A DNA stretch of 64,000 bases, taken from Scyliorhinus canicula. Lineage: Eukaryota. Positions 16,274 through 60,709 of the stretch are shown piece by piece (positions within the stretch are counted from its first letter, which is position 1; every line of letters begins with the position of its first letter). The stretch covers positions 143,075,875 to 143,139,874 of the forward strand of contig NC_052146.1 of the NCBI RefSeq assembly GCF_902713615.1, read 5' to 3'. A program made the translations under genes and the position numbers. The notes below the pieces were generated by a model that was not told the DNA's origin, made no database searches, and saw only the letters and a list, made by a program, of their open reading frames with translations.

Positions 16274-16844
16274 GGGCGAAATTCTCCGACCCCTCCGCGC
16301 TGATTGGCAGGCCCCCCGCGCCGATCGGCATGCCCCCTACAACGATTCTCCGGCCCGCGATGGGCCGAAGTCCCGCCACTGAGAGGCCAATCCCGCCGAC
16401 GTGGTTTCAACCACCTCTGGTGGCGGCTGGATTGGCGGCGCGAGTGGGCCCCAGGGTCCTGGGGGGCGATCAAACCCTGGGGGGTGCCCCCACGGTGGCC
16501 TGGCCCGCGATCGGGGCCCACCGATCGGCGGGCGGGCCAGTGCCGCGGGGGCACTCTTTTTCTTCCGCCGCCGCCACGGCCTCCACCATGGGCGCTGATG
16601 CACCGGCGCATGCGTGAACCGGCGAAGGCCTTTCGTCCAGCCCCGACGCCGTGCGGCGGAACGTCAAAAGCCGTTGGCGCCAGTTTTGGCGCCAGTCAGT
16701 GTGGCGCCAACCACTCCGGCGCGGGCCTAGCCCCTAAAGGTGCGGAGAATTCCGCACCTTTGGGGAGGCCCAACGCCAGAGTGGTTGGCGCCACTGCGCT
16801 ACGTCAGGACCCCCCGCCCTGCCGGGTAGGGGAGAATCCCGGCC
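16274..16844. mobile_element. GC-rich Harbinger-type MITE
   Basis: TIRs GGGCGAAATTCTCC...GGAGAATCCCGGCC; flanks CTC/CTG; removing it restores the host LINE. Confidence 0.85.
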
Positions 16845-36892: not shown

Positions 36893-38124
36893 TTTATATA
36901 ATTGGCAGCAAACATCACAAAGCTGTCCCCATAGCAGTACTTCAGTCAGACCTATGTTTATTGTTTGAACCTATGTGGCAATGTCTGAGGATGTAAATCT
37001 TCGTTATTTTTGGCCGAGTTCACTTGACCTGCACAGGGGGAGAGGAGTTTGGGGTACAACCCATTTTCACCCTTTGCTGACTGCATGCAGAAATTGTGAC
37101 GTGACAAGCAGGCAATTCATCAGATACCTTGCCCCCTGTTGTGGCATCCCAGTTGGAAGCAGCGTTGGCAGCATATCAAACTCTTCCATAAATTATGCAA
37201 GTTCAGCTTTGCAGCAAATCCGCTAGCATACTGGAGCATTTGACTTACTGTACAATGCCCTAAATAAAAATTGCAAATTGCATTGCACCAGATATCCAAG
37301 GGAACATGGATCAGCCAGAATTGTTCCATTTACACTTTCATTAACAGACTGTCCTGTTCTTCCTAAACAAAATGACAAGTGTCGGTCCCAAATATTGTTG
37401 ACCCAACGGAGCAGCACCCCAGCAGTACTATTACTGACTCTGGCCCATCTCAGGGTGGAAGTCTCAGTTTGCCACATTTCCAGTGGTGGAGTGGACCTTC
37501 TGGAATTCCTGGGCCACTGATATCCAGATATGGACAATATCGACACAAGTATATTCACAGTGAAACCTCATCATAACAAACTACGAAAATATACAATCCT
37601 TTTCACCCAGGAATTCAGAGGTAGACATTTTTATGATCAGCGAGGGCCACCCGCCACTGCAATCAGTCTCAAAAATTGAGAATTCCACCCTATGTTGCCA
37701 CAGAAATCTGCTATGTTGCCAGAGACGTGACCACCAGGAAAAGGTTTTCCTTTAGTTTATATATAATTACACATCACTCTTCAAGTTTGCTGATGCCGTA
37801 ACATTGATGATTCAATGCTTTTAACGGTTCTTCACTGGTTATCAATGCTCCTTTAAGGATTTGTTGCCTCTTTTATAGCCCCGTGAAATTTTAACTACAC
37901 AATCTCAAGACAGAACAATTGTCTTATACCATATTTAGTTTGCCTGCCAAATAGATCTTGTGTAATATTGTTTGCTCTCCCCGAAGCAGTAAAGGAAAAT
38001 CTTTTATTGTAATAACTGTTGCTGAGTACCACTGCCCTCTTAGGAAACACACAAATCTGCAGCACTTTCTCCAAAATGGATCTGTCAGCAACTACGTGCG
38101 ATACTCTTGATCACAGGATGGAAC

Positions 38125-38452
38125 TATGTTATTCTCCAAGTATGAATAAAGATTGTAGCCTTCCAGTAAACATAAATACTTAATTCAGTAGGTTTGTTCT
38201 GTTTCCAGAGCTTAACTAGATATAATACAGCCAAGAGGTATGGCCAGTGAAGCTAAGGTAAGCTGCCTATGCTGAGCTGTCTGTCTGCTGCTGCTGCTCC
38301 CTAGCTCTGTGCCTCTGAAAGAGGTGGATCCTCCCTTGAGCTGGACCCTTTATACCCGTCTCTGATGCCCTCTAGTGATTATGTGGCTGTTACATCTGTC
38401 TGCAGTCCCTGGTGTATGTGCAGATGTATGTACAGATGTACAGATCACTACA
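38125..38452 (-). mobile_element. Solo LTR (328 bp) with 5-bp TSD GGAAC
   Basis: Minus strand starts TGTAGTGATCTG, has TATAAAGG, and ends ...AATAACATA (CA mutated); GGAAC at 38120-38124 and 38453-38457. Confidence 0.75.
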
Positions 38453-38702
38453 GGAACAGATGGTTATTTTGATGAATCTGTTATTTTCTCCCTGTTAATT
38501 GTAGCCACAGAGCAAGAGTGCATTGGTCTTTCCCAAAACTTCAATAAGAGAGATGGTCTAGCATTACATTCACGTTCTGAAGGCTAAACTTTGAATCCCA
38601 TTTGAGGGCATCTCTCCAACACAACTAACACAGCACAACCATCTTTTCAACATTGCCTATTGAGAGAAGGAGTGTAAGATAGAAGACTGATATATTGCAT
38701 GA

Positions 38703-39686
38703 GGTACGGGTCAGGTACATTTTGGCGCCGCCCTTTTGGCGCCGACCTTTTGGCGCCCATCTGTTTTGGCGCTCATCTGTTTTGGCGCTGGCATTTTTGG
38801 CGCTGGCCTTTTTGGCGCCGCCAACAGGAATCCAACAGTCCGGGAGCTGGTTTGTTTACTGAGTTCATTTCCCTCAGTTTGTTGCTGACTTTCTTATCCC
38901 GTGAGTAGTTTTTATTGTCCAAGTCTCTCACCATCCGGCAAGTTCCCGCAAACTCATACACTGCTCTGTTACAGACGTCATGATCTGTCTGATATTAACT
39001 CTGTTACATAATGCTTATTTTAACACATTAATCAGATGAGACAGATGTTAAGGAGACCACTATTACAGTTAGCATTAAGATGAAATATGAGGAGGCAAGA
39101 GGTCACACACAGCACTCGTATGCCGCCGTGCTAATTGTAACTGCAGGGTCGGGCAAATTATAAAATAAGAGAAAGCTTGTCTGATGAGGTATAGTAGTAA
39201 ACCAGCCACTGCAGCCCCTGTCCGGGAACTTGCCGGATGGTGAGAGACTTGCTTAGGTACAGAACCTTTAGTTTGGGCATTTTGTTATTTTTCCCGAATC
39301 TAGTCTTATCTGCTGCTTTACTATTTGATCCGTACTCTGCATATTAACGTATGTACATCACCGCTATACGTATGGCAAATAATGACACACTTAGTAAACG
39401 TTATACGATTGAACCCGAGGGCTAAAGATAATAGCAAATTCGTAAGGAAACAATATCAGACAGATCATGACGTCTGTAACAGAGCAGTGTATGAGTTTGC
39501 GGGAACTTGCCGGATGGTGAGAGACAGTCAGCAACAAACTGAGAGAAATGAACTCAGTAAACAAACCAGCTCCCGGACTGTTGGATTCCTGTTGGCGGCG
39601 CCAAAAGGCCAAAAAGGCCAGCGTCAAAAAGGCCAGCGCCAAAACAGATGAGCGCCAAAAGGTCGGCGCCAAATAGTCCCATTCCC
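38703..39686. mobile_element. Non-autonomous foldback DNA transposon (MULE- or Merlin-like) with long TIRs, TTTTGGCGC tandem arrays and a 9-bp TSD
   Basis: ATTGCATGA at 38694-38702 and 39687-39695; GG...CC ends; arms ~38720-38996 and ~39452-39673 are reverse complements. Confidence 0.88.
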
Positions 39687-40203
39687 ATTGCATGAAAACC
39701 CATGCTCTTGATGCATCGGTTTGTACAGCCCGCAACAATTCAGTCATGAATTTATTGGGTTTCACCGAGGCAGGAAATCCATTTGCACTGGGTCTTTTCA
39801 ACTTTCCCCCTTTTCTAGTCTCCTCCAAATTTTCTGTCATTGGCAGTCAATTCTACCATTTACACTTGGATAAGTGCAGCTAGAAGAGGCTTTTTGACAT
39901 GGACCATGGTCCGGTTGAGAGTGTTGTTCATGGGAGATGTTTAACCACGGCCTTGTCTTGGCTCATACAAGATCCCATGCTACTATTTCAAGTGTCATGC
40001 CTGTGTTCTTGTGCAGTCTGTTCTTCTGTGTTCTTCTGGAACTGCTAAGGTGGTTGCCAGGAGTCAGGTTTAGTTAACATGCGTACCTCAAGCTTCTGGA
40101 AATCTCTAATTGAATCACCCTGGAATGGACATCCCTAGACAGCACCACTTAGTGGAATTCACACTCAGCATTGTTCAAAGTTCACGCCAAACACAGAATC
40201 AAT

Positions 40204-57867: not shown

Positions 57868-60709
57868 TAGCGCAGAGGCCGGGGTGGAAACTGGATGTGG
57901 GGCTTTTGGGGAACCAAGTGTTCTGTGAGAAAATTGAAAAGGTAATTAAGGAATATGTAGTTTTCAACTGTATGGGTGAGATGTCGAAGGCAGTTGTCTG
58001 GGAGGCTCAAAATGCGGTGGTGAGGGGTGAGGTAATTTCGTTTAAGGCCAGGGTGGACAAAGAGGAGAGGTTGGAGTGGGAGAGGGTAACAGATGAGATG
58101 TTGGAGGTAGATAGGAGTTATGCGGAAGATGGAGACCCAGCGAAGCTGGAAAAGAAATGAAAAATGAAATGAAATGAAAACCGCTTATTGTCACGAGTAG
58201 GCTTCAATGAAGTTACTGTGAAAAGCCCCTAGTCGCCACATTCCGGCACCTGTCTGGGGAGGCTGGTACGGGAATCGATCCGTGCTGCTGGCCTGCTTAG
58301 TCTGCTTTAAGAGCCAGTGAGCTAAACCAGCCCCAGCTGGGGAAGAGAAAGGAACTACAGGCGAGCTTCGACCGACTGTCTACCAGGAAGGCGGTGCGCC
58401 AACTGAGACGAGCTAGGGGTGCAGTTTATAAACATGGAGATAAGTATGTTAGCAGGTCAGCTCTGGAGGGAAGCAGCAGCAAGGGAAATTCTTCAGGTGA
58501 GGGATAGGGCAGGGAAGTTGGTGGTGGCTCCAGAGCTGATTAGCAAGGTTTTTGAGGAGTTTTATGAGAGGTTGTACACGTCAGAGCTACCCGGGGGAGA
58601 CCGTGAAATGCAGGAATTTTGAGATGGGTTGGAGCACCCGAGGCTAGGGGAGGGGGACAGGGCTACATTAGAAGGAGCAATAGTGGGGCAGGAGATAAAG
58701 GATGCGATTGGGAGAATGCAGTCGGGGAAGGTGGCAGGGCCGGATGGGTTTCTGGTGGAATATTATAAAAAATTCAAGTATAAGCTGGCACCCCTGATGG
58801 TGGGGATGTTTGAAGAGGCGATAGGGAAGGGGGTGTTGCCACAAACTTTGGGGCAGGCATCAATTTCACTGTTGCTAAAAAAAGATAAGGATCCGACGGA
58901 GTGTGGGTTGTATAGGCCCATATCACTTCTGAATGTGGACGCAAAAGTATTGGCGAAGGTACTGGCGGGTAGGCTGGAGGAGTGCCTCCCGAAGGTGATA
59001 GGTGAGGATCAGATGGGGTTTGTGAGAGCGAGGCAGCTTTTTGAGAACATTAGGAGGGTTTTGAACGTCGTTATGGCACCGGCGGAAGGGAATGAAACAG
59101 AAGCGGTTCTGGCATTGGACGGCGAGAAGGCGTTTGACCCGGTAGAATGGGGGTACTTGATGGCAGTTCTGGAGCAGTTTGGGATTGGACCAATATTTGT
59201 GAACTGGGTAAAGCTACTATATAAGGAGCCAAAGGCGAATGTCCGCACAAACAACATCAGCTTGAGATACTTTTCTCTCCACTGAGGGACGAGGCAGGGA
59301 TGTCCTATGTCCCCTCTGCTGTTTGCACTTGCGATTGAGCCATTGGCCATTGCATTAAGAAGTTCAGGAGCATGGAAAGGAATAGTGCGAGGGGGTTGGG
59401 GGATAGAGCATAGGGTGTCCTTATATGCCGATGACTTGCTGTTATATGTGTCGGAACCGAGTGTGGTGATAGGGGGAATATTGGAGCTACTGCGGGTATT
59501 TGGGTCTTTCTCGGGGTACAAGCTGAACCGAGACAAGAGTGAGTATTTTGTGGTATCTTGGCCGGGGGGTGGGGGGGGGGGGGCTGCCATTCTGTAGGGC
59601 AGGGACTCACTTTAGGTATCTGGGGCTGCAGGTTGCCCAGGAGTGGGGGAGGCTTCGCAGATACAACATTAGTTTGGTGGAAAGAGTGAAAGCCGATATG
59701 GCAAGGTGGGATGGTCTCCCTCTGTCACTGGCGGGTTGGGTACAGGAGGTTAAAATGAACGTGTTGCCGCAATTTCTGTTTATCTTCAAATGCCTACCGA
59801 TTTTCCTGCCAAAGGCTTTTTTCAGGGAGATTGAGGGAAGGATTACCTCATTCTTATGGAGAGGGAAGGTGGTCAGAGTGAGAAAGATGCTGCTACAGAG
59901 AGGAAGACAGGCAGGGGGTTTCGGTCTTCCGAACCTGATGTATTACTACTGGGCGGCGAATGTGGAGAAGGTGCGGTGCTGGGTCAGAGGGGTTGATTCC
60001 CAATGGGTCAGAATGGAGGAGAGTTTGTGCAGGGGGTCGGGATTGAAAGCACTAGCAACAGCGCCGCTCCCGATAGCTCCGGGGAAATATTCAGGGAGTC
60101 CGGTAATAATAGCTTCATTGAAAATCTGGAGGCAGTTTCGCCAACACTTCGGGTTGGGGGCAGGGTCAAGGGAAATGCCGATTCAGGGGAACCACAGATT
60201 TGAGCCAGGGAGGTTGGATGGAAATTTCCGGAAATGGGAAGAGAAGGGGATTAAGACGCTAAAAGACTTGTTTCTTAGGGGTCGGTTTGCAGGATTGAAG
60301 GAGCAGGGAGCAAAGTATGGGCTGGAGCAGGGAGAAATATTTAGATACATGCCAGGTTTGAGATTTTGCCAGAAAGGAGATACAGAGCTTCCCGGAGGAA
60401 CCGGCCTCCACATTGCTGGAGGAGGTGCTGACGACAAGGAGACAGGAGAAGGGGGTAGTGTGAGCGGTATACGGAGCTATTTTGGAAGAGGATAAGGCAC
60501 CACTGGAAAGGATCAAAGCAAAGTGAGAGGAAGAGTTGGGAGAGGTCATAGAGGAGGGGTTCTGGTATGAGGTGCTCTGGAGAGTGAATGCCTCCACCTC
60601 ATGTGCGAGGTTGGGGCTGATACAGCTGACGGTGGTATACAGAGCACACCTCATGAGGGCGAGGATGAGCCGATTCTTTGAAGGAGTGGAATATGTGTGT
60701 GAGCGTTGT

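Follow-up and report, generated by a model that had tools for sequence, protein, structure and literature searches.

The window analysed here comprises 64,000 nt of Scyliorhinus canicula DNA (assembly GCF_902713615.1, NC_052146.1:143,075,875-143,139,874, forward strand). It contains a 984-bp element at positions 38703-39686, lying between perfect 9-bp direct copies of ATTGCATGA at 38694-38702 and 39687-39695. The length of this TSD agrees with the range of the MULE superfamily, which is 8-10 bp and usually 9 bp. The outermost ends of the element are dissimilar: the left one reads GGTACGGGTCAGGTACA, the right one GGGAATGGGACTA (reverse complement, read inwards). A first-pass annotation of the same DNA had described an insertion of this length with a perfect 9-bp TSD and unlike termini, and the sequence bears out all three points. 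The element has no ORF of note, and a Pfam search of the long ORFs of the window found one reverse-transcriptase fragment only and no gene context. No further copies of the element were detected in the 64-kb window by blastn.

Structure of the foldback element

The left end begins with an A-type terminal motif, GGTAC-GGGTCAGGTAC-A, at 38703-38719 (+ strand), which was recognised by alignment to the relatives described below. It is followed by a subterminal array of seven units of 14-16 bp with the core TTTTGGCGC (38720-38827, + strand), and then by a non-repetitive left inner arm (38828-38996, + strand). The right inner arm (39452-39593, - strand) is an inverted copy of the left one, which carries 32 extra bases around 38895-38922. 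Next comes the right subterminal array (39594-39673, - strand) in which four units match TTTGGCGC while another is degenerate (TTTTTGACGC) and a further one truncated, and the element ends with the B-type terminal motif GGGAATGGGACTA, as read on the - strand, at 39674-39686. This motif was also placed by alignment to the relatives. The terminal motifs are thus 13-17 nt long and are followed by seven units on the left and about six on the right. Phantom-, Muta1- and Tm1-type elements likewise open each end with a short terminal motif and continue into an array of subterminal tandem repeats of about 13-16 bp, whose number is not the same at the two ends.

The inverted arms measure 294 bp (left) and 235 bp (right), both above the 100 bp that serves as the TIR criterion for MULEs. 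The segments 38810-38894 and 39522-39606 pair at 98%, while 38923-38996 and 39452-39525 pair at 100%. The arms had been described as nearly identical apart from an indel of about 35 bp, which is corrected here to 32 bp. As single-stranded DNA the element folds back on itself with a minimum free energy of -322 kcal/mol, compared with -120 +/- 7 kcal/mol in shuffled sequences. Between the arms lies a middle part (38997-39451) that is non-coding and, as judged from contig joints, differs between family copies; by tblastn no transposase remnant was found inside the shark element. The middle part contains a third copy of a piece of the arm (39223-39251, + strand), which is inverted relative to the left arm and identical to 38920-38948 at 29 of 29 positions. 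It includes a CAA present only in the left-arm version. This third copy had been proposed before, and it is confirmed at a length of 26-29 bp. The possibility that an arm piece, which has a TATA-like alternative context, represents a known RNA gene was rejected, as it gave no Rfam match; across the whole window no Rfam family reached its gathering score.

The core TTTTGGCGC occurs seven times on the + strand at 38720-38818, with spacings of 14, 14, 16, 16, 15, and 15 bp, and three times on the - strand at 39598-39660. The whole 64-kb window contains 11 matches, ten of them inside the element, while about 0.41 would be expected, and none of 100 shuffled sequences reached 11. The looser consensus TTTSSCGC is found in the element seven times on the + strand and four times on the - strand. 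Both arrays thus have the composition first ascribed to them, namely seven copies at 14-16-bp spacing on the left, and about four intact and two degenerate ones on the right. The observed/expected ratio of CpG is 0.81 in the element and 0.48 in the window, so that the element can be called CpG-intact in a relative sense, as had been suggested.

Empty site, age, and copy number

Logan contigs of four public runs (X1, X5, X13, and X14), which represent three organisms, were aligned to positions 38203-40186. Run X14 stems from a related species (organism C) and yielded an 809-nt contig in which 38511-38693 is directly followed by 39687-40186. The contig jumps exactly 993 bases (from 38693 to 39687), with nine ambiguous letters, and it has one ATTGCATGA where the shark window has two. 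Compared with the window, its flanks carry about 40 differences in 683 positions. This contig is the orthologous empty site, and a single copy of the 9-mer in a related species is what the first-pass annotation had proposed to look for. The insertion is thereby shown to postdate the split of the shark lineage from organism C, and the earlier description of the element as young holds in this relative sense.

Both junctions of the element are spanned by exact contigs in run X1 (organism A). In X1 and X5, which are two samples of organism A, the word depth of the element is 40-415 per bin, compared with 4-6 in the unique flanks, and in two individuals pieces of the element reach 10-80 times the depth of the flanks, although word depth is not a calibrated copy number. 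The element is thus shown to be a member of a multicopy family that occurs in at least two organisms, and the other genomic copies that had been anticipated do exist. Members of the family also differ in structure. Organism B has an array-plus-arm piece that is one 15-bp unit shorter, together with an internal piece. One shorter variant in the contigs lacks 38979-39254, another has its arms connected via a 35-nt loop, and a contig of organism C contains a palindromic joint that has no loop.

The stretch 38828-38931 is found in a second repeat context in the three organisms, as seen from loose ends at 38828 and 38931 in all four runs (X1, X5, X13, and X14). Together with GTGAGT it could be a candidate first exon, captured in the manner of Pack-MULEs; the other context is known from 30-nt loose ends.

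Related elements and their transposase

Metagenome contigs were scanned for three TTTGGCGC units at the observed spacing, which gave at least 120 loci. When the shark element was compared with these loci by BLAST, the matches reached beyond the arrays to its outermost bases on both sides. Among the matches listed, about ten contigs have an array that is preceded by terminal motif A or B; these include L006, L032, L082 (= L121), L115, L022, L028, L069, L071, and L104. The A motif GGGTCRGGTAC is common to L006, L104, L082, L022, L115, and L032, while the B motif GGGAATGGGACTA, or a close variant of it, is common to L115, L032, L069, L006, L082, L028, and L071. Five bases (GGTAC) of the shark A end are absent from the relatives. 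The homology between the shark element and the metagenome loci is limited to the outer 80-120 bp of each end, and the repeats inflate the BLAST statistics. The terminal motifs nevertheless constitute independent evidence, since they were not contained in the search pattern.

Complete elements, which like the shark element pair an A end with a B end, are found in L006 (9964-10926), L032, L082 (= L121), and L115. The element in L006 is flanked by a 9-bp duplication with eight of nine positions matching. Exact duplications were not recognised around those in L032, L082, and L115, which are taken as older copies. The order of the units is partly common as well, with TTTGGCGCCGCCG as the first and TTTTGGCGACGAC as the second unit in several A ends. 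At each end a specific terminal motif (A, GGGTCRGGTAC; B, GGGAATGGGACTA) is shown to precede an array of repeats of about 15 bp with the core TTTGGCGC. The contigs contain few ORFs and some LINE fragments, and they look like eukaryotic host DNA.

Two other sets of sequences gave unrelated matches. In viral contigs the array pattern was found four times, in each case as 15-bp tandem repeats on one strand that lack the terminal motifs, and two patterns for terminal motifs had no match there. The B-terminal motif gave 62 matches in bacterial and archaeal genomes, mostly at one conserved Collinsella or Rhodobacterales locus; these are regarded as chance or unrelated matches, since none of them is followed by an array.

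Positions 2000-2636 of contig L104 encode the C-terminal half of a transposase, with one frameshift; this stretch ends about 270 bp before the A end. Pfam found no match directly on the C-terminal ORFs of L104, and family membership was therefore established via relatives. A protein atlas search gave a weak MULE lead only. A word search retrieved close fragments, among them P0008, which is 68% identical to the L104 remnant and scores 31.1 bits against the MULE domain PF10551 (cut-off 27.6), while the P0002 remnant has a weak FLYWCH start (E = 0.16). A full HMMER search then returned 2238 relatives at E ≤ 0.001, and the full-length ones are 450-520 aa long. All nine full-length relatives that were tested (466-521 aa) combine an N-terminal FLYWCH domain with a MULE domain, and PF10551 scored above its cut-off in eight of them. 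The named relatives are insect proteins, from firefly and aphid. FLYWCH fingers, which occur in MULE transposases, have a DNA-binding fold that belongs to the WRKY-GCM1 class (PMC1702500).

Remnants of the L104-type protein also lie between the ends in L006, L082, L025, L110, and L010, with the B end upstream and the A end downstream, so that these short elements are internal-deletion derivatives. The orientation relative to the transposase was taken from L006 and L104, and the shark element, in which the A end is on the left, was therefore assigned to the - strand. By homology the shark ends are shown to correspond to the ends of elements that hold FLYWCH-MULE transposase remnants. The earlier proposal of a mobile DNA transposon of the MULE/Foldback type is thus supported by the TSD, the arms, and the homologous ends.

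It is likely that the shark element as a whole (38703-39686) is a non-autonomous, internally rearranged foldback MULE derivative that belongs to a FLYWCH-MULE lineage of the Phantom/Muta1/Tm1 type. Since the shark copy is itself non-coding, and an autonomous partner sharing its exact termini was not seen in the shark genome, the assignment relies on its termini and arrays, both of which are homologous to ends enclosing MULE transposase remnants. The probable placement with the Phantom type rests on the domain build and length of the relatives and their presence in insects, together with the end architecture.

Role of the subterminal repeats and comparison with known systems

The TTTGGCGC/TTTTGGCGC repeats most likely serve the transposase as docking sites. 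They are best explained in this way because of what is known from Muta1, Tm1, and Galileo, and the E2F-like sequence of the repeat core would then be incidental. A transposase supplied in trans would recognise the terminal motif and bind the subterminal repeats cooperatively, as an oligomer, with the N-terminal FLYWCH zinc finger, by analogy, as the probable repeat-binding part. It would pair the two ends, cut at the termini, and join the cut ends to a target cleaved with a 9-bp stagger; the duplication of 9 bp that accompanied insertion at ATTGCATGA would have arisen in this way. The first-pass annotation mentioned transposase binding as a fallback to its proposal concerning E2F, and it is this fallback that the termini, the lineage, and the analogy to Muta1 favour.

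According to the proposal itself, the TTTGGCGC arrays may be working E2F/DP sites, which would either time expression or transposition of the element to S phase or, when spread as clusters, alter host chromatin or genes nearby. There are 11 exact matches to TTTSSCGC, the in vitro consensus, in 984 bp, and the specificity of E2F is conserved across animals. A promoter role is also conceivable, as in the relatives the transposase ORF is preceded by the B-end array. There is a precedent in plants: the E2F sites of Brassica MITEs are described in PMC5950925, with reference to Henaff 2014, as bound by E2F in vivo. The E2F-site MITEs of Brassica and Arabidopsis resemble the present family in being small, non-autonomous, and able to multiply E2F-consensus sequences (PMC5950925). 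They differ from it in that binding in vivo is reported for Brassica, while the shark motif is a subterminal repeat of a MULE and a match in sequence only.

Several observations speak against working E2F sites. Among the metagenome contigs the motif, its place beside the cleavage ends, the order of the units, and both of the unlike termini travel with the FLYWCH-MULE lineage. Arrays are present at both ends, including the one downstream of the gene. Of 72 repeat cores in 15 ends, among the matches listed, 60 are TTTGGCGC and none is TTTCGCGC or TTTGCCGC, the other one-mismatch cores that E2F would accept equally; TTTCCCGC was undetectable, as the search tolerated one mismatch. The core thus nearly always has GG, and in the same 72 cores the bases after it are constrained as well, being Y and then G. 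A variant outside the E2F consensus, TTTGGCGA, is conserved as the second unit in several A ends. The CpG in each site would probably be methylated in an intergenic transposon of a vertebrate, and methylation blocks binding of most E2Fs. Tm1 and Muta1 keep the array architecture with repeats of unrelated sequence. Finally, TTTSSCGC matches are poor predictors of occupancy in vivo; the motif is present in 12% of E2F1 ChIP peaks, which equals its share in random promoters (PMC3069401). Working E2F sites therefore seem improbable as an account of the arrays, and the more specific suggestion that these recruit E2F, or tie transposition or local chromatin to S phase, is unsupported and unlikely.

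The two functions might also be combined. The repeats would then bind the transposase and at the same time be true E2F/DP sites, which would activate the element where germline or embryonic cells proliferate. As E2F specificity is conserved across animals, they would also make the lineage workable right after jumps between distant hosts, including the shark. If this were true, non-autonomous copies would be spreading clustered E2F sites in the genome of a vertebrate. Such a dual role must be considered quite improbable.

It is very improbable that the element belongs to another superfamily of DNA transposons with an 8-9-bp TSD, such as Merlin, hAT, or a P/Galileo-like foldback element, and that its likeness to MULE ends is convergent. 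Merlin elements make duplications of 8-9 bp, and the shark copy encodes nothing. The inverted repeats of Galileo, a member of the P superfamily, are likewise long and internally repetitive (PMC3688188). However, MULE-domain transposase remnants lie between ends to which both terminal motifs and the arrays are homologous, and the duplication is 9 bp both in the shark and in L006 (eight of nine matching). Galileo makes duplications of 7 bp and hAT elements of 8 bp. Merlin becomes unnecessary as an explanation, since the termini are tied to a MULE transposase. That the locus is a local palindrome or a segmental rearrangement which is not mobile is hardly credible: it is single-copy in the 64-kb window, but a related organism, in which the site is exactly empty and the 9-mer stands once, refutes this reading, and the multicopy depth, the structural variants in the reads, and the homologous elements elsewhere argue against it as well.

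MULEs have been regarded as doubtful or absent in vertebrates (PMC6446971). The present locus is a clean and checkable MULE-type cut-and-paste insertion in a shark lineage, with a 9-bp TSD, an empty site, and a multicopy foldback family. Within one FLYWCH-MULE lineage the terminal motif and the TTTGGCGC array are conserved across hosts, and together they offer a concrete DNA target for asking what the FLYWCH domain of the transposase binds.

Among the known systems, Galileo and the Drosophila Foldback element (FB) share with the shark element their long, internally repetitive inverted repeats and their structural plasticity, FB being compared by architecture only. In Galileo the THAP domain of the transposase binds several sites in the tandem repeats of the long inverted repeats (PMC3688188), which parallels the docking sites proposed here, but Galileo differs in belonging to the P superfamily and in having a THAP domain.

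Muta1 from Aedes aegypti is a MULE that has been placed with Phantom and described as a "type 2 foldback element" (PMC5499845). In its inverted repeat of about 145 bp, a 10-bp terminal motif is followed by nine subterminal repeats. More repeats give stronger transposase binding and oligomeric complexes, and cleavage requires the terminal motif plus a repeat (PMC5499845). The shark element resembles it in belonging to the MULE superfamily and at the level of architecture, in having a terminal motif followed by subterminal tandem repeats. The relatives of the L104-type protein have the same FLYWCH plus MULE build as the mosquito proteins of the Muta1 group (PMC3169594, Table 1). Unlike Muta1, the shark element lacks a transposase, has dissimilar A and B termini, and resides in a vertebrate; it also adds an inner inverted repeat of about 170 bp that is not tandemly repetitive.

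Tm1 of root-knot nematodes is a Mutator/Foldback element of the Phantom subclass with a 9-bp TSD and asymmetric outer motifs, A1 and A2 (PMC3169594). These motifs are followed by a variable number of 13-15-bp tandem repeats, which differ in count between the arms, and then by an inner conserved part. Tm1 encodes a 496-aa transposase with FLYWCH and MULE domains, and MITE-like non-coding derivatives exist (PMC3169594). The shark element shares with it the 9-bp TSD, the asymmetric ends, the repeats of 14-16 bp in unequal numbers, and the status of a non-coding derivative. The repeat unit of Tm1 is CGATTCAGTATCCGC, compared with TTTTGGCGCYG... in the shark; the terminal motifs differ as well, and the histone-hairpin motif of Tm1 is absent from the shark element. 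The architecture of a terminal motif, subterminal repeats of about 15 bp, and a 9-bp TSD is thus already known from Muta1 and Tm1.

Transposase lineage in metagenome contigs

A second group of metagenome contigs combines TTTGGCGC arrays with remnants of the same transposase as in L104, a contig retrieved by its three-unit array-core pattern. The group includes L017, L025, L110, L122, and L123 from metagenome Ga0081606, and L013, L028, and L111 from Ga0126325/28/33. These contigs keep the transposase remnants, but their terminal motifs are different or unrecognised; the transposase lineage therefore comprises several subfamilies, in several hosts.

The MULE transposase remnant in L104 is truncated, and immediately upstream of it lies an ORF of 174 amino acids (L104 1431-1952). 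Pfam gave no match for this ORF. On visual inspection its sequence looks like the C-terminal tail of ORF2 from a non-LTR retrotransposon, and this likeness suggests that the MULE copy was cut off by a LINE insertion.

Tandem repeats of 15 bp with a TTTTGGCGC core, all on one strand, are also found in two contigs binned as giant viruses (L003 5073-5141 and L004 324-450), an example of the unit being TTTTGGCGCATTCCA, present five times. Both contigs lack the MULE terminal motifs, and their repeats appear unrelated to the MULE.

Other features of the window

Outside the element, TTTTGGCGC occurs only once in the window, at 16684-16692. This copy lies within the G+C-rich segment 16001-18000 (GC 0.585), possibly a CpG island. 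The ORF fragment at 58629-59282 encodes a Pfam reverse-transcriptase domain (RVT_1, E = 2e-17) and is therefore a decayed retroelement. Seven further long ORFs in the window gave no match to Pfam. An Rfam scan of the whole window, including 36756-36904, returned no family at gathering thresholds, and thus no hammerhead.

Repeats adjoining and shared with the element

The segment immediately left of the MULE insertion, 38203-38470, belongs to a highly abundant interspersed repeat that may be SINE-like and has no relation to the MULE. Each of the four runs, under three organism labels, shows word depths in the thousands here, and loose contig ends are numerous at 38280-38452.

A 104-bp piece of the inner left arm, 38828-38931, is also found between other sequences in run contigs of organisms A, B, and C, with ...GGGTATTTAAATGCCGCTCACTGGGACCC upstream and TGTTACTGTCTCAGTGTTAGTCTCTCTCTG... 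downstream. In organism C, the related species with an empty site, its depth in this alternative context is about 35 times that of single-copy sequence. The MULE arm therefore has DNA in common with another repeat, and this sharing could be explained either by a sister family or by capture in the manner of Pack-MULEs.
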